Notes under the pieces: model-generated
What the model saw: the letters and a program-made list of their open reading frames with translations, nothing else
Told to the model about the DNA's origin: nothing
Databases searched by the model: none
NCBI RefSeq assembly: GCF_046119375.1
Contig: NW_027362769.1
Span: forward strand, 259,656,001 to 259,720,000
Direction of reading: 5' to 3'
DNA: 64,000 nucleotides
Source: Phyllobates terribilis
Taxonomy: Eukaryota
Translations under genes and position numbers: made by a program
Shown: piece after piece, positions 48,073 to 64,000 of the stretch
Position numbering within the stretch: position 1 is the first letter of the stretch
How the letters are laid out: each line of letters starts with the position of its first letter

Positions 48073-49339
48073 CTAAAGGATTTTACAGATAACATTATCA
48101 CTCCAAGTCACACAGTGCAGATACAGAATAATATTTATGTGGCGCCCAGCTCCGCTTGGTACCACAGATCCTAGAAGGGTGCATTAATGGAATCCTCCAC
48201 AAGAGGCCCCCATAAACATTCACACATCTCCACCTTCCACCTCAGACCAGCAGAGGGAGCCCGTTAGGGATATAAATAGGGAAGGTGGAGCTAGGCAGTT
48301 GAGTGATTCAGCAGTTCCTCTGGAGAGTTCAGCAAGTACAGACCTGAATACAGAGTCGAGCTCAGTTAGTCTGGAGTGCACAGAGAGTGAAAAGCTGTGT
48401 GTGCGGAGAAGCACGTGGGTTTCTGTGTAGGCAAACTAGGCCTCCAGCAGTCCTGAAGCCCAGTCTAGACTCAGGAGCTCAAGTAAGTGAGCCCAAGGTG
48501 TGCCAACGCCTGTAAGAGCGGTGAAGAGTGGCAAGCTGCCGTTAGTGTGAGTAGCCTAGTGAGGGCCCGAGTGTGGCCAAAGGCGAGTGGAAAGTGAGCA
48601 GCAGTGGGGACAGAGGAGCTTACCCAGCTCACCCCAAAGAATATACCGGACACCGGGTCCGAGCTTACCGGGATCTTTATGACCCAGTAAGGCATAACCG
48701 GAATCCCTGGAGAACTACAGGTCCCAGGCTCACCAGAGAGCTGATACGCAACAGAGTCAGGAGACACATAGGCCCCGTAAGCTGGGAGCATGCACTCCAA
48801 GAGAAGGCCCTACCACAACGTCAGCCGATGCAGGACAGAGATAAAGTTTTGCCTAGCTTCAGGCAGGTCAGAAACTTTCTACGCAGAGGCAAGAAACAGG
48901 AGGCCCTACACCCGCTCATTGGGGAGGATCCTGATATGCACCCTTCACCCTACAGTGCTCAGGGATGTGCCTGAACTACCACCAGTAAAAAGTACCGAAG
49001 TGACTACCGTGTCCATCCCGGTTCTTGCTCTGACTCGGCTGGGTCTCACCTGTCCTGCATCCCCCCTCTGCGTACGCTGCCCTGAGGCCTAGCTCCACCT
49101 GTGGGGAGCTATACCATCGAGCTGCCATATCACCGGCCTCAGTGGACTGCCGCAGCGCTGGTGATTCTCACCAGAAACCACAGGTGGCATCACGAATTTC
49201 CATGAAATTAACAAACAATCCCCTTTTAAAAGCTGACCCCAGGGTACGGGCCCGGTAGCCGACCACCGAGACATCCCCAAGGCCAGGCAAAGGCCCGGGT
49301 ACCGAGTTGTCCCCATCCCCCTGGGCGAGTCATCTTTCC

Positions 49340-49357
49340 TGGCGTCACGAACAGGAT
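49340..49357 (+). promoter_or_regulatory. Primer-binding site for tRNA-Ser(CGA)
   Basis: TGGCGTCACGAACAGGAT is complementary to the tRNA-Ser(CGA) 3' end ...ATCCTGTTCGTGACGCCA (tRNA sequence from memory). Confidence 0.85.
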
Positions 49358-49723
49358 TTCGTGCCCGCTGCAACGACGGAGTGTTATGCCCTTTGCCACC
49401 GGGTACTGTGCGCCTTTAATTAAAAACTGTGTACGTTAAACAGTGGTAAAGATTGCCGCCATTGTTGGGCCGCCAAGCGAGAAGAAGGGCGTAACTGCGG
49501 GAAACTGAGGGGCGTACCTGCAAAAGCACGCGAAGCCCCGGACATGCCCCACGCCTCGAAGTCAAACCAGGAAGCGCCAGGTCCTTGAAGGAGCGTCGCT
49601 GAACGCTCTGACGTAGGACGCAAGCGACGCAAGGTCCTGAAGAGGACCGTCACCTGCGGAGCTACGGCCTACCGGAAGAAAAGAAAAGAAGGTAGGCCAC
49701 GGTTCGCTAGGGGGGGCGTCAGA

Positions 49724-50887
49724 ATGTCCGAGGAACAGCACGACGCCAGAATACCGGTTAATGGCTCTGATGTTCAACCCGCGCCTGACGCCAGGCTGGC
49801 CGGAGCGGCCGCTCCACCAGCAGCGCCTGTAACCCCTGTCATTCCCATAACTCTGCCGTACATTCCTGGAGCAAAGTGGCTCCCCCAGTACAACGGCAGA
49901 CCAGATACCCTGTCTGGATTCAAACGGAAGATATGCGGTATCTTGGACATGTATTCTATGACAGGCAAGCAGAGGGCCGCTGTTGTATTAGGACAACTGA
50001 CTGGTGCTGCGGAACAGGAAGTGGAAACATGGTCAGCCGCAGACCAGGAGTCAGTGTCAAAGCTACAGACTGTTTTTGAGGATCATACCGAGGCGGACCT
50101 CCGGATGAGGTTCTACAACTGTTCCCAACAGCCAGAGGACAATGTTCGGGACTATGCCTGGCGTCTACAAGGGGCCCTGCGGGCTCTGAAACAGGTTAGT
50201 CCGACCAGCATCGAAAATGAAAACAAAATGCTGAAGGAAGAGTTTGTCCGGGGACTGAGGTCTCCAGAGGAGAGCAGAACTGTACGTTGGTGGTCCTTGG
50301 ATCATCCAGATGCCACCTTTGACAATCTTAAGGACATGGCTATAAAAGGACTGCAGCCCCTGGAAACAAATGCCATCCAATGTTACCAGGGTGGGGCTAC
50401 CCCAGTGCCTGCTACACCCACCTTTTCCCCAGTGGCTGCTGAAGCCAAGGTTCCAGCAACGTCTCCTAGAGAGCTGGACAGTCTGCGCTCTGATGTGCGC
50501 CAGTTGAGCAAAAGCCTGACCACTGTGCTGAGTGCTCTGCAGCTACGGACGGAGCCCGAGGAAGGAGGGAAAATCCTGTTAGCAGATAGCCCTGAGGATG
50601 TCCCCTGGATGCGAAGGAGGAGGAGGACAACACCACCCTCTACGAGGATCAGTGACCAGCGCCGTCCACAGAAGGACCCTACCTGCTACTGCTGCCACAA
50701 GACCGGACACACCGCCCAGAATTGTCCTTTAAACGAGAAAACCCTGGGGCCGAGGGCCGACACCCAGGAGTATCTCAGCCAGGCCCCTCAGACTGGTACA
50801 ACAGGTTCGTCGGAGGAAGATCTTTCCTGTCCATTGTGCTGGACGGCATCCCGACGCACGCTCTGCTGGACACAGGATCTCAGGTAA
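49724..50887 (+). CDS. gag: Gypsy C gag
   Basis: 387-aa ORF with CYCCHKTGHTAQNC knuckle, homologous to Gypsy A gag. Confidence 0.9.
   Translation: MSEEQHDARIPVNGSDVQPAPDARLAGAAAPPAAPVTPVIPITLPYIPGAKWLPQYNGRPDTLSGFKRKICGILDMYSMTGKQRAAVVLGQLTGAAEQEVETWSAADQESVSKLQTVFEDHTEADLRMRFYNCSQQPEDNVRDYAWRLQGALRALKQVSPTSIENENKMLKEEFVRGLRSPEESRTVRWWSLDHPDATFDNLKDMAIKGLQPLETNAIQCYQGGATPVPATPTFSPVAAEAKVPATSPRELDSLRSDVRQLSKSLTTVLSALQLRTEPEEGGKILLADSPEDVPWMRRRRRTTPPSTRISDQRRPQKDPTCYCCHKTGHTAQNCPLNEKTLGPRADTQEYLSQAPQTGTTGSSEEDLSCPLCWTASRRTLCWTQDLR
50728..50768 (+). promoter_or_regulatory. -1 programmed frameshift signal
   Basis: T TTA AAC in gag phase, an 8-nt spacer, then a CCTGGG/CCCAGG stem. pol is in the -1 frame. 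Confidence 0.75.
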
Positions 50888-53800
50888 CCATAATGCCTGA
50901 CGTCCTCTACAAGAGGTTCTGGTCCATGGGCGACCTAAGCCCACCAGCTCCAAATCTTTCTGTTTATGCCTCAAATGAACTCCCCCTTAACCTAATCGGG
51001 GTTAAGAATGTGACAGTAAAGGTGGGGAGAGTGGAGCTGAAGGACCAGGGACTAATTGTAGTAGAGACTAATCCTGATGATACCAATCCGTATATGGTAC
51101 TAGGCACTAACATTGTTGGTAACTGTTTGGGAGAAGTTGTGTTCTTGCTCCAACAGATAGCTGACACTGCCAGACCAGGACAGAGGAGGGTGCTGCAGAA
51201 GGAGATCCGAGTCCTGATGTACCAGCAGCAAGTAAGGTTAACAGATGGTGAAATCGGTAATGTGCGGGTGACGGACCCCATACCCATTGTGATCCCCCCA
51301 ATGAGTGAAATGCTTATCTGGTGTAGAGCTGCTATAGGTCTTAGAGGACAGAGCTACCAGGCGGTAGTAGAACCCCTTTGCTCCGAGCACAGACCCACGC
51401 TCTTAACTGCCAGAGGAGTGGTAGATGTACGCAATGGGAGGGTGCCCGTCCGTCTTCTCAACTGTGGGGAAGATGAGGTCAGATTGCCACGTTATGCCAC
51501 TGTTGCCAAATTACATGCTGTAAATAACAATTGCATTCACAAGGCGGAGTCCTTAACCTCACCAGACGAAGTGGAGGATAATGGCACTGCAACCCAGGTG
51601 GAGGATTGGTGTCAACAGCTCCATGTTGGGACAGACACCACTCCTGCCCATCAGAAACAGGGTGTACACCGGGTGGTTCAAGACTATGCGTAGGTGTTCA
51701 GTAAACATCCACTTGACTTCGGGAGGATTAAGGGGTTTCAACACCATATCCCCACAGGTGACCATCCACCCATCAAAGAACGTTACAGGCCTATACCACC
51801 AGCACACTACCAGAAGGCTAAGGAAATGTTGCACGACATGAGAAAGGCGGGGGTAGTAAGGGATAGTTGTAGTCCCTGGGCAGCTCCCCTAGTGCTAGTT
51901 AGGAAAAAGGACGGGAGCATGAGAATGTGTGTAGATTAACAACAAGTAAATCGCATTACACATAAAGATGCATACCCTTTACCACGTATTGAGGAATCCC
52001 TGACTGCCTTGAAGTCTGCAAATTACTTTTCCACCCTTGAACTCACTAGTGGGTACTGGCAAGTAGCTTTGTTGAGGAGGATCGGGAGAAGACGGCCTTC
52101 ACTACCCCGATGGGACTCTGCGAGTTCAACAGTATGCCGTTTGGACTCTGCAATGCCCCTGGAACGTTCCAGAGATTGATGGAGTGCTGCCTGGGACACC
52201 GCAACTTCGAGACTGTGTTACTATACCTGGATGACATGATAGTGTACTCCAAAACGTATGAGGACCACCTGAAGCACCTGGCAGAGGTATTTGAGTCACT
52301 GTCCCGGTACAGGATGAAGTTGAAGCCCTCAAAGTGACACCTGCTCAAGAGAAAGGTACAGTACCTGGGGCACATTGTCAGTCCGGAAGGGGTAGCACCA
52401 GACCGGGAGATGGTCACTGCCATCCAGAAGTGGCCGGAGCCGAAGAACCTCAAGATGGTGCGTCAGTCCTTGGGACTAGTAGGATACTACCGGAGGTTTG
52501 TAAAAGACTACACCAAGAAAGCAGCTCCTCTGCAAGACCTCCTGGTAGGGCAGTCCCAGAAGGGCAGAAATCCCCCATTCCACTGGGGTAAGGAGCAAGC
52601 CGAGTCATTTCAGCAGATGAAGGAGATCCTGACAGGCGATGAGATCCTAGCCTACCTTGACTACAGCCAACCGTTCCTGCTGTATACTGATGCCAGCAAT
52701 GAAGGACTGGGAGCTGTCATAAGTCAGAAGCAGAATGGCCAAGAGAAAGTGATTGCATAAGCAAGCAGGAAGCTCCGCCCGACCGAGAGGAACCCAGAGA
52801 ACTATAGCAGCTTTAAGTTGGAGTTCCTGGCCTTGGTCTGGGCCATCACAGAAAGGTTCAAGCACTACCTAGCCTCCAGTAAGTTCACTGCCTTCATTGA
52901 TTACAACCCCTTGACCCATCATGAAACAGCTAAGCTAGGAGCACTGGAACAACGATGGATGGCTCGGCTGTCAAGTTATCAATTCACAATTAAATACCGG
53001 GCGGGCCGCAAGAACGCCAACGCCGATGCCCTGTCCAGGATGCCTCACCAGTCAGACACAGAAGAAGAAGTGGATGACCTGGAAGAGATTGAGCTACCTG
53101 TCTTTCACCGGAATGGGATGATCCACGAGCAATGAGCCACCAGGAGGCAGCGTGGAAAGATGTTAAACCCCCTACTTCACCACAGCTGGAAAGAGACCCA
53201 GGACAGTGACCCGGTTGTCAGTCGCATCAAGGAGCTGATAACCCAAGAAGGTTCCTCCCTGGAAAAAGAAGCGTCTCTGCAAGCAAAGCAGCTGTGGAAC
53301 GAGAGAAGCCGGCTGTTTATCTACCGTGAGAAGCTGTGCCGGAGGTACGTCAATACAAAAACCTATGAGATGGTATGGCAGATAGTGGTCCCCAAGACAG
53401 ACATCCAAATGGTGCTGGAGGCCTACCACGATCAGGCGGGGCACTTTGGCTGGAAAAAGCTAGAGACCCTGCTGAAGTGTCGATTCTACTGGGTAGGAAT
53501 GCGCAGCTCCACTGAACGGTGGTGCCGGGACTGTGGACCCTGTGGCCTCAGAAGAAAAGACTACAGCAGCCAGAAGGCACCCCTGCAACCCATCAAGATG
53601 ACTTGACCCCTGGAGATCATGGCCCTGGACCATGTCAAGCTGTCACCCAGCAGGTCAGGGTACTCGTATGCCCTGACCATGGTGGATCACTACTCACGTT
53701 TCCTGGTGGTCGCCCCCGTCAAAGACCTGACGGCCGAGACAACAGCAAAGACGTTCCAAGCGTATTTCTGTAGACCCCATGGTTATCCTGAGCAGGTGCT

Positions 53801-54851
53801 GACGGACCAAGGCCCGGCCTTTGAGGCTGAGTTGTTCAAGGAGTTCTGCCATTTATACGGGTGTAAGAAGATAAGAACTACACCGTACCACCCACAAACC
53901 AATGGTCTCTGTGAGAAGATGAATAACATCATCATCGACCTGCTGAAGACCATACCACTTGAGGAGAGAAATCAGTGGCCAGACCTACTACCTGACCTAG
54001 TAGATCTGTACAATCACATATCAGTAAGTTCCACCAACTGTACTCCGGCATATCTCATGAGAGCAAGGCCAGGAAAGCTGCCCATGGACCTGGAGCTTGG
54101 TGTTGTAGAATCAGAAGCGGATGTGACCACTGAGGACTGGGACACGGCCAGACAGGAGCAGTACAGAAGAGTACAAGCAAGTGTTGAAGACAGTCTCACT
54201 CGGGTGAGGGACAAGCAGGAAGCTCAATACAACAGAGGTGCCCAAGCAGAACCCTTCACACCTAGTGAAGTAGTATTAAAAAGGAAAAGAAGAAACCACA
54301 AACTTGATGACCAGTGGGAGAGGGAACCCTACACTGTGTTGAATTCAAGATTTGATAATAGGAAGACTTGCATAATTAGCAGAGGCGGAGGAAGGACGAC
54401 TGCAACAGTATCCAGGGATCACTTAAAGTTGTGTCCAGATCTGATAAAACCCCAAGAGGAAGTGCCTCTCGTTATCCCGGAGGAGCCTAAAGAAGCAGTA
54501 ATACACACTGACTTAGGAGATTTCCCGGCAGATTGGCCCCAACTAGGAGGAGCAGTAATCATCCCTGTAATTACCTTCTACCCACAGCAAGAAGAGCCTG
54601 TAAGTGCTGAAGAGGAGCCAGCTAAAGAAGAATCCCCGGATGAAGGATCCCCGGTAGGAGAAGAGCAAGAAGGCCCAGCCAATGGTGAACTTGTCAGTCC
54701 TGTAGAGAGGTCAATGCAGCCTTGTAGCCTCTTCACACCTAGTACTGACACATTGGGAGGTAGAGCACCTATTAGTGCCTCACGCATTCCAGTACCACGC
54801 AGGTCTACGCGTAGTACTAAAGGTCAACCCCCTGTCAGGTATAATCAGTAA
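50728..54851 (+). pseudogene. pol: Gypsy C pol (PR-RT-RH-IN)
   Basis: LLDTGS, YLDD, YTDAS, HHCC zinc domain and the ALDH/LTDQG/LCEK DDE triad. Stops near 51691, 51937, 52335, 52758, 53133 and 53604, and a frameshift near 52070. Confidence 0.93.
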
Positions 54852-55428
54852 GATAGCTAAACTCTGACAAATGTAGATAGTTACCCCTGGGGTATTATAT
54901 AGCATTAAATTTAATTGAATTATATTGTGTGTTTTCATGCATATGTATATTATTTTGTGCTTTGCTTTATTACTGAACAGTTCAAGTTATATGGACACTT
55001 TACCTAATGACTTCCTTATTTATCTAAGAACTCCGTGGCTGTGGACTGTATGCAGCCCAAAAACTATTTCTTGTAAATATTTGCACTCCCTGGAGTGCCC
55101 TTCTAGGTGACCTCAGAAGTAAAACCTGTCTGGTGTTGCTCTAATGGGGGTCCAACTCGGGATCTTCATGCCCTGCAACCACCCCAGGGCCTACGTTGAG
55201 GGTTTGGGACAGGTCCCTCAAGCCACCAAGTACTCTACCCTGTGAGATGGACATCCTGTCTGGGAACCTCACCACAAGAGACTTGAATTCTGAGGACGCT
55301 TTGTACCTGTTTATGTTATTATGCAACGTTTAAGAAATGTGCCTCCCATAAAGGGAAGAGTTATTGCATTGTTAATGTTTACTATTGTTGTTTTAAAATG
55401 TACTTCAGCCCGGGAGTGCTGAGCTTTG

Positions 55429-55439
55429 CTAGGGGGGAA
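55429..55439 (+). promoter_or_regulatory. Polypurine tract
   Basis: CTAGGGGGGAA immediately precedes the TGTGGCGCCC start of the 3' LTR. Confidence 0.85.
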
Positions 55440-55487
55440 TGTGGCGCCCAGCTGCGCTTGGTACCACAGATCCTAGAAGGGTGCATT

Positions 55488-56716
55488 TGTGGCGCCCCTG
55501 AGGGATCGACCGCCACAGGAATGCTGCACTTCTCCAATGGAGTGTGGTGTTCCTCCTCTGAGGTAAGGCCGGTGTGATGGTTGTGACCTAACCCTTTTGC
55601 ATCCAACACCACATTTCTCCACCAGAGGGAGCTAGAATGCACTAGGTTCTGCTCCCCTGGTTACAGGGAGACTGGGGAACACAAAGTGGTAGGAACCAGT
55701 TAGTGGGTGTGGGTGGAGGATCAACTAGTTGGTTACACTTCAAATTTGATATTTAATAGAATGCCATCTTTGATCTGGGGTCTTTGGCGGTTCTATTGGC
55801 TCTTGGTTCTTGGTATGTCAAGTGGTCTAAACTACTGTGTGTTATGTGACCTCCCTCCGGGAGTGCAGATCCTGTGTGGGCCTGCACCGGTAAGGGACAC
55901 AGCCCTCGTACCCTGGCCTTGGGACGAGAGGTAGGTTGTGGACAAGGAATGTCTCAACCCGGCCAAGGACCAGGATCAAGAAGGCCCGGGAGCTTTAGAG
56001 TGTGGCTCCCTAGCAAATGGGTCCCGGGGAGGATGCAGACAGAGCAGAGCACGCCACCTGTCCTCGCCTACCTGATCTATTCAGAGGGATTCCGTCTGCA
56101 AGAGTGGTACCGGCCCCCGACACCCGACCTTGTACTCTACGTCCAGGACGGGAAAGCCCGGCTAGGCCCTGAGGATCCCACCGGGCGTCGGATGGAGAGG
56201 AATTGCCACCCGAGCCCTACACCTGAGAGGAGCTCAGAGGGAGACCCGGCCTATCTACACACGCACAGACGGGAAAGGGTGAAGTCTGTAGTGCAGGAAC
56301 ACTCTGGTGTAGGGTCGCTACCGAACACTGGACTTCCTCGGAGGTAGTCGGACCCCCGTCCCTGGTGGCCGCAGGACTCCTTGAGGAGCAGGGAGTCACC
56401 TTCCCGTTAACATCTCTGAGTGAGTAAAGCCTTGGAAGTTCACCCCTATGGCCTCCGGACTGTTCATTACGCGCCATACCACGCGACGTGGTGCCCGTAT
56501 CTCCCCACGCTACTACTACCCTCCTTCATCTTGTTTGCCCTGAGGCCTTGCTCCGTCTGTGGGGAGCAGTAATAACTTTAGCCGCCATGACATCGAGCCT
56601 CAGCGGACTGCTAGCAGCTCTGGTGGCCTTTCACCAGACACCACAGGTGGCGTAGTCGTAAAAATCAGCCACTCAATCCGGAATAGCCCACACCATCTCT
56701 TTCTAATGTGACGGGC
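55488..56716 (+). mobile_element. Foreign-family LTR segment inside the Gypsy C 3' LTR
   Basis: Begins with a new TGTGGCGCCCC terminus, is absent from the 5' LTR, and replaces about 200 bp. Confidence 0.75.
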
Positions 56717-57826
56717 AGTGAAATGCTGTGTGTGCGGAAAAGCATGTGGGTTGCTGTGTAGGCAAGCTAGGCCTCCAGCGGTCCTGAAGCCCAGTCTAGA
56801 CTCAGGAGCTCAAGTAAGTGAGCCCAAGGTGTGCCGATGCCTGTAAGAGCGGTGAAGAGCGGCAAGCTGCCATTAGTGTGAGTACCCTAGTGAGGGCCGG
56901 AGCGTGGCCGAAGGCGAGTGGAAAGTGAGTAGCAGTGGGGGCAGAGGAGCTTACCCAGCTCACCCCGAAACATATACCGGACACCGGGTCCGAGCTTACC
57001 GGGATCTCTATGACCCAGTAAGGCATAACCGGAATCCCTGGAGAATTACAGGTCCCAGGTTCACCAGAGAGCTGATACGTATTAGAGCCAGGAGACACAT
57101 AGGCCCCGTAAGCTGGGAGCGTGCACTCCAATAGAAGGCCCTACCACAACGTCAGCCGGTGCAGAACAGAGATAAAGTTAGGCCTAGCTTCAGGCACGTC
57201 AGAAACTTACTACGCAGAGGCAAAAAACAGGAGGCCCTACACTCGCTCATTGGGGAGGATCCTGATATGCACCCTTCACCCTACAGTGCTCCGGGATGTG
57301 CCTGAACTACCACCAGTAAAAGGTACTGAAGTGACTACCGTGTCCATCCCCGTTCTTGCTCTGACCCGGCTGGGTCTCGCCTGTCCTGCATCCCCCCTCT
57401 CCGTACGCTGCCCTGAGGCCTAGCTCCATCTGTGGGGAGCTATAACATCGAGCTGCCATATCATCGGCCTCAGTGGACTGCCGCAGCGCTGGTGATTCTC
57501 ACCAGAAACCACAGGTGGTGTCACGAACTTCCATAAACTTAACAAACAATCTCCTTTTAAAAGCTGACCCCAGGGTACGGGCCCGGGAGCCGACCACCGC
57601 GACATCCCCAAGGCCAGGCAAAGGCCCGGGTACCGAGTCATCTCCATCCCCCTGGGCGAGTCATTTACATCCAGGCAATTACCACTAACGTCTCATCAGA
57701 TCAGAGTCAGATTCTGCTGCTTCTTCTCCATCTGGTCAGACCTTCATGTCCACATCACCCAGCCACGACTCATCTTGTCACTATGATCAGTGCAGCCTAG
57801 AAAATAACAAGGTCACATATATTGTA

Positions 57827-59389
57827 CACTGCTCAAAAAAATAAAGGGAACACTTAAACAACAGAATATTACTCCAAATGAATCAAACTTCTGTGAAATC
57901 AAACTGTCCACTTAGGAAGCAACACCGATTGAAATTCGATCAATTTCACATGCTGTTGTGCAAATGGAATAGACAATAGATGGAAATTATTGGCAATTAT
58001 CAAGACACCATCAATAAAGGAGTGGTTCTGCAGGTGGGGACCACAGACCACATCTCAGTACCAATGCTTTCTGGCTGATGCTTTGGTCACTTTTGAATGC
58101 TGGTTGTGCTTTCACACTCGGGGTAGCATGAGACGGACTCTACAACCCACAGAAGTTGCTCAAGTAGTGCAGCTCATCCAGGATGGCACATCAATGCTAG
58201 CTGTGGCAAGAAGGTTTGCTATGTCTGTCAGCGTAGTGTCCAGAGGCTGGAGGAGCTACCAGGAAACAGGCCAGTACACCAGGAGACTTGGAAGGGGCCG
58301 TAGGAGGGCAACAACCCAGTTGCAGGAGCGCTACCTCCTCTTTTGTGCAAGGAGGAACTGGAGAAGCACTGCCAGAGCCCTGCCAAATGACCTCCAGCAG
58401 GCCACAAATGTGCATGTGTCTGCACAAACGGTTAGAAACCGACTCCATGAAGGTGGTATGAGGGCCCGACTTCCACAGATGGGGGTTGTGCTCACAGCCC
58501 AACACCATGCAGGATGCTTTGCATTTGCCACAGAACACCAGGATTGGCAAAGTCGCCACTGGTGCCCTGTGCTCTTCACTGATGAAAGCAGGTTCACACT
58601 GAACACATGTGACAGACGTGACAGAGTCTGGAGAAGCCGCGGAGAGCAATCTGCTGCCTGCAATATCCTTCAGCATGACGGGTTTGGCAGTGGTTTAGTA
58701 ATGGTTTGGGGTGGTATTTCTTTGGAGGGCCGCACAGCCCTCAATATGGTCGCCAAAGGTAGCCTGACTGCCATTAGGTACCGAGATGAGATCCTCAGAC
58801 ACCTTGTGAGACCATATGCTGGTGCGGTTGGCCCTGGGTTCCTCTTAATGCAGGACAATGCCCGACCTCATGTGGCTGGAGTGTGTCAGCAGTTCCTGCA
58901 AGATGAAGGCATTGAAGCTATGGACTGCTCCCCCCCCCCCCCCCGTTCCCCAGACATCATGTCTCGCTCCATCCACCAACATCACGTTGCACCACAGACT
59001 GTCCAGGAGTTGGCGGATGTTTTAGTCCAGGTCTAGGAGGAGATCCCACAGGAGACCATCCGCAACCTCATCAGGAGCATGCCCAGGTGTTGTAGGGAAG
59101 TCATACAGGCACGTGGAGACCACACACAATACTGAGCCTCATTTTGACTTGTAAGGACATTACATCAAAGTTGGATCAGCCTGTAGTGTGTTTTTCCACT
59201 TTAATTTTGGGGGTGACTCCAAATCCAGGCCTCCATTGGTTAATAAATTTGATTTCCATTGATGATTTTTGGGTGATTTTGTTGTCAGCACATTCAACTT
59301 TGTACAGAACAAAGTATTCAATGAGAATATTTCATTCATTCAGATCTAGGATGTGTTATTTGAGTGTTCCTTTATTTTTTTGAGCAGTG
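57827..59389 (+). mobile_element. Full-length Tc1 transposon (1563 bp), non-functional; transposase about 58128-59135
   Basis: TA-CACTGCTCAAAAAAATAAAGG(G)AACAC TIRs at both ends. LFTDESRF and MQDNARPH are present, the SPDLNPIE motif has lost its E, and there is a TAG at 59034. Confidence 0.95.
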
Positions 59390-59614
59390 TATATATGCAT
59401 GTCTCCCCCACACTGACTACAGATATGTACCCCACCATTAATATGCTATTAGCCACTTAGTAATCAAAATATAAAGTGATGAGCACTGCAGCACTGTGCC
59501 CCCCATTAACTATAATCTCCACCTGCCAATAATATAAATTATTCAGTCTCTGTGACTCTCCCCAATTAACTGTAAGGCTATGTGCACACGGAAAATATAC
59601 AAGTCTGTACAGTA

Positions 59615-60260
59615 CAAGCAAAGTGAAACCCCCATCATTGCTCTGTCCCAGCACCCCGTCATTGATCTCTCCCAGCACCCCCCGTCATTACTCTCCCCAT
59701 CCCACCATCCTCATTAATGATCTCTCCATCCATATCATTGCTCTTCCCATCCTCATCATTGCTCTGTCCCAGCAACCACATCATTGCTCTCTCCCAGCAC
59801 CCACATTATTGCTCCCTCCCTGTCATTGCTCTCCCCATCATTGCTCTCCCCATTGCCACCATTGCTCTCCCCATCCCCACCATCCTCATCATTGCTCTTC
59901 CCATCCCCACCATTGCTCTACCCAGCCCCATCATTGCTCTACCCAGCCCCATCATTTCTCACCCCAGCCCCATCATTGCTCACCCCAGCCCCATCATTGC
60001 TCTCCCAAGCCCCATCATTGCTCTCCCCAACCCCATCATTGCTCTCCCCAACCCCATCATTGCTCTTCCCAGTCCCATCATTGCTCTTCCCAGCCCCATC
60101 ATTGCTCTTCCCAGCCCCATCATTGCTCTTCCCAGCCCCATCATTGTTCTCCCCAGACCCATCATTGCTCTCCCCAGCTCCATCATTGCTCTCCCCAGCA
60201 CCATCACTGCTCTCCCCAGCCCCATCACTGCTCTCCCCAGCCCCATCATTGCTGTCCCCC
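59615..60260. repeat. 21-bp minisatellite (CCCAGCCCCATCATTGCTCTY), about 30 copies
   Basis: Direct reading. It accounts for the repetitive ORFs in five frames. Confidence 0.9.
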
Positions 60261-61783
60261 ACCTCCACTCATTCTCCTGTTTCTCTCCTAGCGTTTCAGT
60301 ATAAAAAAAAATACACACACAACTTACCTCTCAGCCCACTCCCGCAGCATCCTCCTAGTCTCTGGTAACTTTCTCCCTGACACAGGCCCACACTGCAAGC
60401 AACATGAGCCTGTGTCAGGGAGGAAGCACTGGGAAGGAAGCAGAGGACGAATCCCTGCAGCTACGCTGCCATTTTCCTCCTGTCAGCAGTGGAGCCGCAG
60501 GAATCGCTCCCTGCCCGCCGCAAATGATGAGAGCAATATGGCCATGGGCCCCCCGGAGCCTGGAACTCCGAGAAGCAGGCCAGATTTCCCTCATCATTAG
60601 CCGCCCAGAAAGGGGCCCCCTGCATCGCCGGGCCCCGGTGCAGTTGCACCGGCGGTAGGTCCGCCCCTGCCCTTAATGACTGCCAAAACGCCTTATAATG
60701 GCAGTCGTTACTATACTTATTCCTCAGTGCCTCTTATTCATGGCTCTGAGGAATAATAGTATAGCGCTGCTCCGCGGCCGAATTTCCAGTGGGTGTCAGC
60801 TGTATATGACAGCTGACAACCTGTGGTATCATCCATGGTCAATTTTGAGCCGATCGGTGCCGTTTAACCTTTTAAATACCGCTGTCAATCATGACAGCAG
60901 TATTTAAGTTGTTACAAGAGGGTTGCAAGACCCCCTTAGCAACCATCAGACCCCCACCATGGGAATCACGGGTCCCGATTGTTACCATGGTACGCTGAAG
61001 TCATGTGATGACCTCAAGGTACGGTGGCCTGTGAGATCCAGCTATAAGCTGGGTCTCACAGGCACAGTCAGTGAGGAACTGACTTCTCTCATGCACTGCA
61101 GTACACGAGTACTGCAGTGTATCAGAACAGTGATCAAAAAAAATTATACATGTCCCACAGTGGGACATAGTGAAAAAGTGAAAAAAAGTAAAGTAAAAAA
61201 AAAAAAAGACAAAAAAAGTGCACACAAATCATTAAAATCAGTTTCTCCACACAAAACGCAGAGTTTGTGATAAAAGAAAAATAAACAAAAAAACGCACAC
61301 AGAATTGGTATCACCGCATCTCTATGGGGAGGAGGTTACTTCAGGGGGACGGCTTTAAATATTTGTGCTCCATGTCGCTATGACCGTCAAATGTCCATCC
61401 AATCACCTGCCAGCATATAGTGGATGGTACAGTATTTCACATTATAGGGGGAGGGTATTGTTTTATAGATGTTTTATTATTTATTATATTGATGAAACAA
61501 CATGTGAAAGTCAATAAATGACTCCTCACGTGATGCAATATATCATTATGATTTGTGATTGCATCCAAAAACTATATTTTGAAGAGGTGAATATGACCCT
61601 GCAGTAAATAGTTCTGCCCAGTGAGCGATAACATCACAAACTACCGTATGAGGTCACAATGCAAACATTCTATCTCTATGGATACGGAACCTGCCGCTAG
61701 TAACAGTTCTACTGACACAGTGAAAACGCGACATTTCATATTCACTTTCTGTGACGTGAGAACCGAAATCGCTATCCGCTATA

Positions 61784-63486
61784 ATGACTGAGAGAAGGTC
61801 TGCTAGAGCAAATAAAGGGGCCAGATACAAGAAATATGTATCCAACGGCCTGCTCGACATTTTATGCAAAAAGGAAAAACCTCGTAAGTGTAAAATGAAG
61901 ACATTAAAATAATTGTACAATACAATTCCTGTAAAGGGAACCTGGTCATTAGATAAATGCTTCCCGAGCTGCAGGCAGCATGAATCAGAGCTTGGCGGCA
62001 CGACTGCAGCCAGGTAGGTTTTTCCTGAATTGCTCCGGAGACTTTTCCTTGCACCACTTTAGCTGATCGACAGGTCTCTCAAGTGTTAACATAGAGAGTG
62101 ATCTGTCAATCACCTGGAGCGACGCAGGGGAAGCCAGGAAGGTCACCGGAGGGTGGCAGGGAGACGGTCGCCTCTTTAAACTATGTGTTCTCTGAAACGC
62201 CAGACCGATTTTACAAAAAAACATACCTGGTTGTGGTCATGCAGTCAGACTCAGATTCATGCTACACCTCGTGTGGGCAGAATGAATTGAGTGACAAGTT
62301 CCCTTTAATATGGCATAAGAGCAGCCTGACAAATGCCGGATTAATAGGTATTTGCTAACATTTATTATTACCAATATAAATAGTAAAATAATCCACCAAT
62401 CCTGCGCTACATTACTAGTGCAGAGAAACGAAGAGATCAATAAGTCTAAAATAATCAATTTCATTTCATCAATCAATAAAAATAAGAAACACAATATTAA
62501 GAATATATATGGCTAAAAAACAGAGTGCCCAGTATGAGGGACTAGCCCCTGACCAGGAATACCATTATAATAAAGGCTCATAAATAAATATAACTATCGT
62601 AATATAGTATATCAGCATTTAGAGAAAACTCCCCTAAAACAAATTCTTCAACATAGTATATATGATCCGATATTTCCTGATATCGGAAGGTATCGCTCAA
62701 CACTACTAGTAATGTAACACAGAATTGGTGGATTATGAATTGGTTTGAAGTGCCATTTTTTGCATATGGATTTCCAGTTTTGATGCTAGATAACTAGTAA
62801 AATAGTTAGAAATTATTGATAAGGGGAGAAAACCTTCTGCAAGAAAGTCCAAATTAAAATATAAGCCCCAAATTGGCTGCTATAATTTCCTAAGCAGAAG
62901 GTTCTCCTAATATTCCCTATTTTCTCCACTATTAGCTGTTCGTCGTGTTGTACCAACAAATAAAAAGGAAAGAAGAACATTAAAATATTTCCAGGAACAG
63001 GCCGCCGTACTCCCTGAGATGGGAGAGCCGGCTACAGAAATAGAATATAGACTGTACTCAATGTAAGTAACCACTTGTATAGTACTAGACGTGGTGTTCC
63101 AGAGGGTTCATTTACTTATAAGTCCATGTATCCCGGATAGATGAGGTCTTGTCTCTTTATATCTTAAGTGCAAATTCTCACAGCTCTTAATTCATTAATT
63201 GTCTCATCTAAATAGAGAGGAGATTGAGGCCGAGCTCAGGAAACCAGCAATAATATTTAAGGAGCCCAGATCACCCGACCCGTGAGTTACACTCAGTGAT
63301 GGCGCCAGCCTCACACTAAAGTCATTCTTAACATCTTAACATCTTGTATCTTCATCAAGTGGAACATCAGGATTTTGGTGTTTATTTTTCAGGGCAGAAA
63401 ATCAAAAAGAGGACAACGACTCGGGCAGAGCAGCGGATAAGACCAGCAAGCCGCCCCCCAAGAAGAAAGCAAAGAAGAACCATTAG
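61784..63486 (+). CDS. Candidate spliced host gene, 128 aa; exons 61784-61883, 62936-63062, 63216-63281, 63393-63486
   Basis: ATG with A at -3, donors C|GTAAGT, T|GTAAGT and C|GTGAGT, pyrimidine-rich acceptors, compatible phases 1, 2, 2, no stops, C-terminal PPPKKKAKK, and ATTAAA at 63776. Confidence 0.55.
61935..62304. mobile_element. T2/Kolobok-type MITE in the candidate intron 1
   Basis: GTAA-AGGGAACC...GTTCCCT-TTAA. Confidence 0.7.
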
Positions 63487-64000
63487 TGATGAGGTGATGT
63501 AGAGCGCCAATATCTTTATTTTTGTGTTTATGAAGAGAGATGAGGACCACTCTATATCAGCCCTTCTAGATTGATAATTGGAGGATATAGTCACATAAAA
63601 ATATTCATAGTATGAAAATCAATAAGAACAGAATAGGTATTACACAGAAGACCAAGTGATTGGGAAACACATAAGATAATGACATTCTACATATTGTAAC
63701 AAAGGCTGACACATCACAGTGGTCAGGAATAGTACAAAGAACCATAATTAGATATTTGCAGTGCATGAAGGTTTCATTAAACTTTGTTGATCTTTTCATG
63801 TTTTCTTGTTTTAGGTGATGACTGCCCCATAATATCAGGGGTAAATGTCACGTGTCACCACCAGTCACCTACAACCAACCCCCCAGAATGAGATGCAATC
63901 CTTACTACCTGCCAACCCCCATCTAGGTCTAACTACCATCAGCTAACATCGCTTACCGCTAATTCCCACCTCCGGTAAGCAGATATGACCACCTACCCTC

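Follow-up and report, generated by a model that had tools for sequence, protein, structure and literature searches.

A four-exon gene of Phyllobates terribilis that is most likely an intact short-form member of a small dendrobatoid gene family

Gene structure and closest homologue

The stretch of DNA analyzed here, referred to as the window, comprises 64,000 nt from the frog Phyllobates terribilis (contig NW_027362769.1, positions 259,656,001 to 259,720,000 of the forward strand) and carries near its end a small gene of four coding exons. Judged from its sequence, this gene is most likely intact and belongs, as a short form, to a small family seen only in Dendrobatoidea in the databases searched. 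Positions 61500-64000 of the window were read directly and the exons were translated one by one. The canonical dinucleotides are present at all six splice sites, clear pyrimidine tracts precede the acceptors of introns 1 and 3, and the reading frame passes through the four exons without a stop codon or frameshift (Table 1). The three codons split by introns are CCT, ATA, and CCG, encoding Pro, Ile, and Pro, and the predicted product therefore has 33 + 1 + 41 + 1 + 21 + 1 + 30 = 128 amino acids before the stop codon, with 31 Lys and Arg residues and 20 Asp and Glu residues within the exons. The model has good support, and the four exons are those of an intact gene with a predicted 128-residue protein that is basic and mostly unstructured. 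A previous sequence-only reading of the same DNA had joined four exons in frame through strong splice sites, and the three GT-AG introns and 128 codons found here confirm that model, whereas the protein string it proposed was apparently one residue too short. It had also described the gene as invisible to the open reading frame (ORF) track, which proved correct: the longest exon holds no more than 42 codons and the ORF list was cut at 60 amino acids, so the gene was missed.

Database queries taken from the window consisted of single exons, and all other queries were database homologues. A phmmer search with exon 2 (41 amino acids) covered 1.84 billion representative proteins without a length limit. 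The best match (E 3.5e-9, residues 35-74) was XP_077136896.1, the 128-residue product of LOC143793800 from Ranitomeya variabilis, which is labeled "uncharacterized protein" in the database and is called P0001 here. The second match was also from R. variabilis (P0002, LOC143810064, 142 amino acids, E 8e-6), and two TPR-like matches near the E-value cut-off look spurious. All four exons align with P0001 collinearly and free of gaps, in the same order as in the window, with 102 of the 125 in-exon residues identical (Table 1). The split codons yield exactly the Pro, Ile, and Pro that occupy positions 34, 76, and 98 of P0001, and over the whole model 105 of 128 residues are identical (82%) with no gap. 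This level of identity is consistent with a dendrobatid other than R. variabilis or with a paralogue. The two proteins have the same length, the same MTERRS start, the same ...KKNH end at the stop, and the same three conserved blocks; the 18% of residues that differ include two positions that are invariant in all seven database proteins of the family described below. Possible extra exons in intron 1, which the sequence-only reading had allowed for, are not borne out, as P0001 is continuous across this junction and has there the proline predicted from the split codon, and ~725 of the 1052 nt of the intron are filled by two insertions resembling miniature inverted-repeat transposable elements (MITEs).

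Table 1. Features of the four-exon gene and its immediate surroundings, in window positions; the last column gives the alignment of each exon with the R. variabilis protein P0001
Feature	Position	Strand	Description	Match to P0001
Octamer resembling a cAMP response element (CRE), TGACGTGA	61752-61759	+	25 nt upstream of ATG	
Exon 1, coding	61784-61883	+	100 nt (33 codons + 1 nt); ATG at 61784, A at -3	Residues 1-33, 31/33 identical
Intron 1	61884-62935	+	1052 nt, phase 1; donor ctc/GTAAGT, acceptor AG	
MITE-like insertion 1, in intron 1	61932-62307		13-nt terminal inverted repeats TAAAGGGAACCTG and inner 47-nt inverted arms	
MITE-like insertion 2, in intron 1	62388-62736		349 nt; 32-nt terminal inverted repeats, 91% complementary	
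Exon 2	62936-63062	+	127 nt; basic linker and most conserved central block	Residues 35-75, 29/41 identical
Intron 2	63063-63215	+	153 nt, phase 2; donor aat/GTAAGT, acceptor AG	
Exon 3	63216-63281	+	66 nt; one EEIEA-type helical unit	Residues 77-97, 18/21 identical
Intron 3	63282-63392	+	111 nt, phase 2; donor ccc/GTGAGT, acceptor AG	
Exon 4, coding	63393-63486	+	94 nt; acidic stretch, then KTSKPPPKKKAKKNH; TAG at 63484-63486	Residues 99-128, 24/30 identical
Vestige of long-form C-terminal tail	63485-63502	+	Next frame past the stop reads SDEVM and then a stop, compare SDEVV in long paralogues	
ATTAAA	63776-63781	+	Sole polyadenylation-signal-like hexamer between stop and window end; suggestive by position	

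The family and its distribution

Family members were collected from 5.8 billion proteins with profile searches and word-index searches, the latter limited to proteins of 78-270 amino acids, and only the exon 2 search covered every protein length. The database members come from five loci of R. variabilis and one of Anomaloglossus baeobatrachus. In addition to P0001 and P0002, R. variabilis has P0005 (LOC143769820) and P0006 (LOC143769819), with lengths of 170/172 amino acids, and the 146-residue P0007 (LOC143794028). The consecutive locus numbers of P0005 and P0006 and their shared location on a 775-Mb record make it probable that they are tandem copies. Identity among the five R. variabilis loci ranges from 40 to 93%. 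The A. baeobatrachus locus, ACNLHF_024624, is represented by two isoforms (P0008 and P0009) that differ by a 24-residue stretch. The genes have four to five exons and encode K/R-rich proteins of 128-172 amino acids that are predicted to be largely disordered.

R. variabilis belongs to Dendrobatidae and A. baeobatrachus to Aromobatidae, both within Hyloidea, and no homologue beyond these two dendrobatoid species was found at E values up to 1 in the exon 2, profile, and word-index searches. No Pfam family was matched by the single exons, by P0001 and P0002, or by all seven members; sub-threshold Pfam matches (FBD, CDC24_OB1, and others) were scattered, each occurring in at most two of the seven proteins. 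PDB sequences held no relative of the family profile, exon 1, or P0006, and the matches to OspA repeat variants and a methyltransferase, with E values of 0.39 or worse, were put down to chance. Feature searches of the ESM Atlas with P0006 and P0008 returned no usable neighbor, and the family profile had no match in IMG/VR or the JGI metagenomes. The window protein itself is absent from the 5.8-billion-protein collection. The sequence-only reading had not recognized the family and had considered the gene lineage-specific, and both points stand: the only relatives in the databases are "uncharacterized" proteins, and as far as the searches reach these are confined to Dendrobatidae and Aromobatidae.

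Databases thus already contain the family, under automatic names given to loci of two related frogs, and what is new is the window gene, apparently an unannotated addition to this known, unstudied family. We consider it very probable that the window contains a real gene of this MTERRS family. Taxonomically restricted ("orphan") genes are likewise short, disordered, and fast-evolving, occur in a few copies produced by tandem or dispersed duplication, and have no detectable homologue outside their clade. The frog family departs from the generic orphan gene in being common to both Dendrobatidae and Aromobatidae and in its sharply conserved motifs, and the term orphan describes such a gene without naming a mechanism.

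Conserved blocks and the short and long forms

Alignment of the seven database proteins gives 35 invariant columns, which are clustered in three blocks (15 adjacent pairs, permutation p ~0.01), and the window gene keeps the family residue at 33 of these. The N-terminal block, M-T-E-R-R-S-x-R-x-x-K-x-A-x-Y-K-x-x-V, lies in exon 1, and all 12 of its invariant positions are kept. The central block, T-L-K...Q-x-A-x-L-P-E-I-G...T...C...Y, is retained at 11 of 13 invariant positions in the window copy, the exceptions being an Ile to Met and a Cys to Tyr replacement. The C-terminal block, S-K-P-x-P-x-K-x-x-K-K, is complete (7/7) and is of the SKPPPKK-x-AKK type in the window copy.

The members differ in the number of helical EEI-[DE]-A units, with one in the short form, represented by the window gene and P0001, and two consecutive units in the long forms of 142-172 amino acids. 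Some of the long forms also continue beyond the basic cluster as ...SDEVV.... In the short form an extra 4 nt, CCAT at 63480-63483, brings in the stop codon, and a vestige of the long-form tail can be read in the next frame past it (Table 1). A paralogue contig from sequencing run X3 (see below) that is without CCAT reads through this point as ...KKNSDEVV. The short-form stop thus differs from the long form by a 4-nt indel, and it is common to the window gene and P0001. Isoform 2 of the A. baeobatrachus gene is without the 24 residues that make up the first EEI-type helical unit. Alternative splicing in effect yields a short form there, a parallel to the form that is fixed in the window gene and P0001.

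Sequencing-run contigs

Contigs from three small sequencing runs (X1-X3, 165-205 million letters), the type of which was a guess, were compared with positions 61400-64000 of the window. A 151-nt contig lies at 63724-63866 with one mismatch. From run X3, a 619-nt contig with a depth of 43.6 aligned at 63437-63479; it reads ...SRKRANKTSK... and, having no CCAT, continues as ...KKNSDEVVTASP, like LOC143769819/20, which identifies it as a long-form paralogue. If the runs are RNA, this hints that the long-form paralogue is expressed much more strongly than the window copy. The isoforms annotated in both of the other frogs provide indirect support for transcription of the family. Transcription of the window copy is neither shown nor excluded by the three runs. 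Just upstream of the gene, a 229-nt contig from run X2 covers 61459-61679 at a depth of 7.2 with four mismatches and could be a transcript of the 5' untranslated region (UTR) or promoter or another repeat.

Predicted properties of the protein

Structures were predicted with AlphaFold2 from the seven-sequence family alignment, for P0001 as a proxy of the window product and for the long-form P0006. The models have a predicted local distance difference test (pLDDT) score of 59.5 and predicted template modeling (pTM) scores of 0.18 (P0001) and 0.20 (P0006) and contain short helices only, with two longer helices at residues 77-95 and 101-126 in P0006. Models of such low confidence suggest that the proteins are intrinsically disordered.

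The consensus of a classical nuclear localization signal (NLS) bound by importin-α is K-K/R-x-K/R. The sequence KKKAKK, which follows a proline run in the disordered C terminus, fits the classical monopartite pattern, and in the long forms a KR pair ten residues upstream of the basic cluster gives a bipartite pattern. As the C-terminal basic cluster fits the classical signal, a nuclear protein is the natural reading, and we regard nuclear localization of the predicted product as probable. The description of a basic protein with a terminal NLS in the sequence-only reading is upheld by the excess of Lys and Arg over Asp and Glu and by the fit of KKKAKK to the consensus; of its further proposal of a nuclear or chromatin protein, the nuclear part is supported by the NLS pattern, and a chromatin role is a lead that comes only from the RRSAR motif.

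This motif belongs to the R-R-S-x-R sequence at residues 4-8, which is invariant in the family and reads RRSAR in the window copy. Residues 22-26 of HMGN2 are also RRSAR, and cryo-EM structures place these residues, as well as RRSSR of Dsup, on the acidic patch of the nucleosome, with the second and last arginines of the motif making the main contacts (PMC12487698). Phosphorylation of the serine was modeled in the same study and is predicted to repel the acidic patch, and more proteins with HMGN-type motifs are expected, described there as an "untapped realm" (PMC12487698). The frog protein resembles HMGN1-5 and Dsup in being small, basic, disordered, and NLS-bearing. However, the HMGN core is RRSARLSA followed by K/M-P (PMC3105402, PMC12487698), and the L-S-A-(K/M)-P portion is missing from the frog protein, where A-N-K-G-A follows RRSAR. 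The position of the motif at residues 4-8 also differs from that in HMGN proteins, where it lies inside a 30-residue binding domain. HMGN proteins have an N-terminal bipartite NLS, an acidic C-terminal regulatory domain, and six exons (PMC3105402), whereas the frog gene has four exons and encodes a C-terminal NLS and a basic C terminus. Neither exon 1 nor any one of the seven members of the family was matched by the Pfam model HMG14_17, even at an E value of 10. With an incomplete core, a different architecture, and no profile match, membership in the HMGN family was rejected, and the frog protein is possibly a functional analogue of HMGN, outside that family. Binding to the acidic patch through RRSAR, argued by this analogy, is a tentative proposal that we hold to be doubtful.

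Two other short motifs were considered and set aside. An R-R-T-L-K sequence recalls the RxxL destruction box of geminin and is present in the window copy, P0002, and P0007; its first Arg is replaced by Lys, Asn, or Thr in the other members, so it is no feature of the family. The sequence K-P-A-I-I-F does not fit the RVxF site for PP1 binding. A possible mimicry of the histone H3 tail by the N terminus was likewise considered and set aside.

Interpretation and alternative explanations

The explanation that best accounts for these results, to which we assign a probability of roughly 0.6, is an intact gene of a dendrobatoid family whose product would enter the nucleus by means of its C-terminal signal and act through short linear motifs. 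Importin-α would carry the protein into the nucleus through the C-terminal SKPPPKK-x-AKK sequence, and once there it would work by such motifs instead of a fold. The invariant N-terminal R-R-S-x-R would be the best candidate among them, and the conserved central block and the EEIEA helix may serve as partner-binding elements. Several observations weigh against this explanation. The upstream region has no CpG island or clear core promoter (GC 0.40, CpG observed/expected ratio 0.75), two family-invariant residues are altered in the window copy, the three small runs of guessed type leave exons 1-3 without a contig and cover no splice junction, and the likeness to HMGN extends over five residues only, with the remaining core absent and no Pfam model matched.

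Some of the same observations would suit a silent or decaying duplicate, in which case the family would be real and the window copy an unexpressed paralogue that has as yet no disabling mutation. The empty exons 1-3 stand against a contig of considerable depth for the long-form paralogue, the two replacements in the central block (2 of 35 invariant positions) occur only in the window copy, the window protein is not in the protein collection, and in place of a CpG-rich promoter there are repeats within 500 nt upstream. We nevertheless consider a decaying duplicate unlikely, since the frame is intact over 128 codons with all splice dinucleotides canonical, and the alignment with P0001 has remained gapless despite 18% amino acid divergence, with 33 of the 35 invariant positions kept. 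Coverage holes in runs whose type was guessed prove nothing, and absence from the protein collection may reflect an unannotated genome. The reading that open frames and splice-like sites line up here by chance, for which the shortness of all the exons and the lack of read support in the three runs might be cited, has a negligible probability: it is effectively refuted by the ordered, gapless 82% identity to an independently predicted 128-residue protein, in which the split codons and the stop also agree. The restricted distribution could also be only apparent, if the family had an orthologue among the small disordered nuclear proteins of other vertebrates and had evolved fast enough to diverge past detection. 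Short disordered proteins quickly lose detectable similarity, the identities of 82% between two dendrobatids and ~50% between paralogues point to fast evolution, and the length limits of the word-index searches given above leave exon 2 as the one query run against all lengths. Against this, no match with E up to 1 was found outside the two dendrobatoid species, in a collection, sourced from NCBI and UniRef, whose coverage of other annotated frog proteomes is expected but unchecked, and neither Pfam, PDB sequences, nor the ESM Atlas held a relative, which makes a wider orthologue improbable.

The sequence-only reading had offered an accessory gene of a DNA transposon as an alternative, and a cargo gene of this kind, such as the second gene carried by Harbinger elements, could have been spread by transposition. 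The gene tables around the homologue loci were inspected, together with the window, in which the 3' flank of the gene is only 514 nt long. The gene for P0001, which spans 7.5 kb, lies antisense within a FERM-domain gene, that for P0008 antisense within a TTC21-like gene, and that for P0005 antisense within a gene model that carries a DDE_Tnp_4 domain of the Harbinger type. This nesting of three members in unrelated gene models, one of them with a transposase domain, is what spread by a transposon could produce, as is the dispersal of members over at least three R. variabilis chromosomes, and the window is itself transposon-rich, with a Tc1/mariner remnant, a separate element, 2.7 kb upstream of the gene. 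However, only one of the five homologue loci examined overlaps a transposase gene model, and P0002 and P0007 have no neighbor within 10 kb. The copy number is five loci in R. variabilis, not hundreds, and one in Anomaloglossus, and the copies are diverged rather than near-identical, with gene spans varying from 2.9 to 7.5 kb as expected for old duplicates. No inverted repeats frame the window gene and no transposase adjoins it (within the 514 nt of 3' flank on that side), and no Myb/SANT, trihelix, or other Pfam domain occurs in any family member. In the three runs no contigs at a threshold of at least 90% lie on the exons, whereas the MITEs of intron 1 are present at depths of hundreds to thousands. 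A transposon-borne gene is therefore very improbable. The gene model at the P0005 locus, inside which the paralogues on the 775-Mb record lie antisense, is over 26 kb long and has a 289-residue product with DDE_Tnp_4, the Harbinger transposase domain also found in HARBI1; it may be a domesticated gene or a chimeric model.

A more far-reaching version of the intact-gene explanation holds that the family was born or radically remodeled in the ancestor of the poison frogs and consists of tiny, disordered acidic-patch binders of the HMGN/Dsup kind, with a C-terminal NLS and with docking through RRS-x-R that would be switched off by serine phosphorylation. This version is unlikely as a whole. If true, it would add an independent, lineage-specific member to the HMGN-motif proteins foreseen in PMC12487698, and it may relate to the handling of chromatin in very large, transposon-laden genomes. 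If RRS-x-R does turn out to anchor these proteins on nucleosomes, the family would represent a new HMGN-like chromatin protein that evolved independently. The present result is a modest gain in annotation together with one testable lead, and the functional reading is provisional. The window gene illustrates that a real four-exon gene, all exons of which are shorter than 45 codons, can be recovered by a reader from raw sequence, and with its limited distribution, its duplications, and its short, sharply conserved motifs the family is a clean example of taxonomic restriction.

Flanking sequence and transposable elements

The CRE-like octamer upstream of the start codon had been pointed out in the sequence-only reading, and its position is correct. 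The sequence TGACGTGA occurs twice in the window against 1.24 occurrences expected, and 35 of 100 shuffled sequences reach two. Occurring at chance frequency, the octamer carries no weight on its own and is not evidence of a promoter. Farther upstream, repeats with A-rich tails extend to ~61300. On the 3' side, the ATTAAA hexamer, from its position, implies a 3' UTR of ~300 nt.

Both MITE-like insertions of intron 1 belong to sequences that recur in the sequencing runs. The first has contig depth at the level of repeats at both of its ends, and the agreement between the window and contigs of other copies breaks off at 61972 and 62306-62308. Over the core of the second (62664-62705, 42 nt), contig depths sum to 790-2120 in all three runs, indicating that it belongs to a repeat family that is very abundant in this frog. 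The Tc1/mariner transposase remnant lies at 57990-59036 on the same strand as the gene, with an HTH_Tnp_Tc3_2 match at E 3.5e-15 and a DDE_3 match just under the cut-off. Between this remnant and the gene, a block of tandem repeats at 59600-60300 is strongly C-skewed, with GC skew down to -0.73, and all three forward frames are open there for ~200 codons, encoding repeats rich in Pro, His, Ser, and Cys. Upstream of the remnant, an LTR retrotransposon occupies 48471-57423, with gag-, protease-, RT-, and integrase-like open frames at 49724-54851 between near-duplicate flanks. The ORFs of these flanks form near-identical pairs, 48471-48800 with 56802-57131 and 48790-49092 with 57121-57423.

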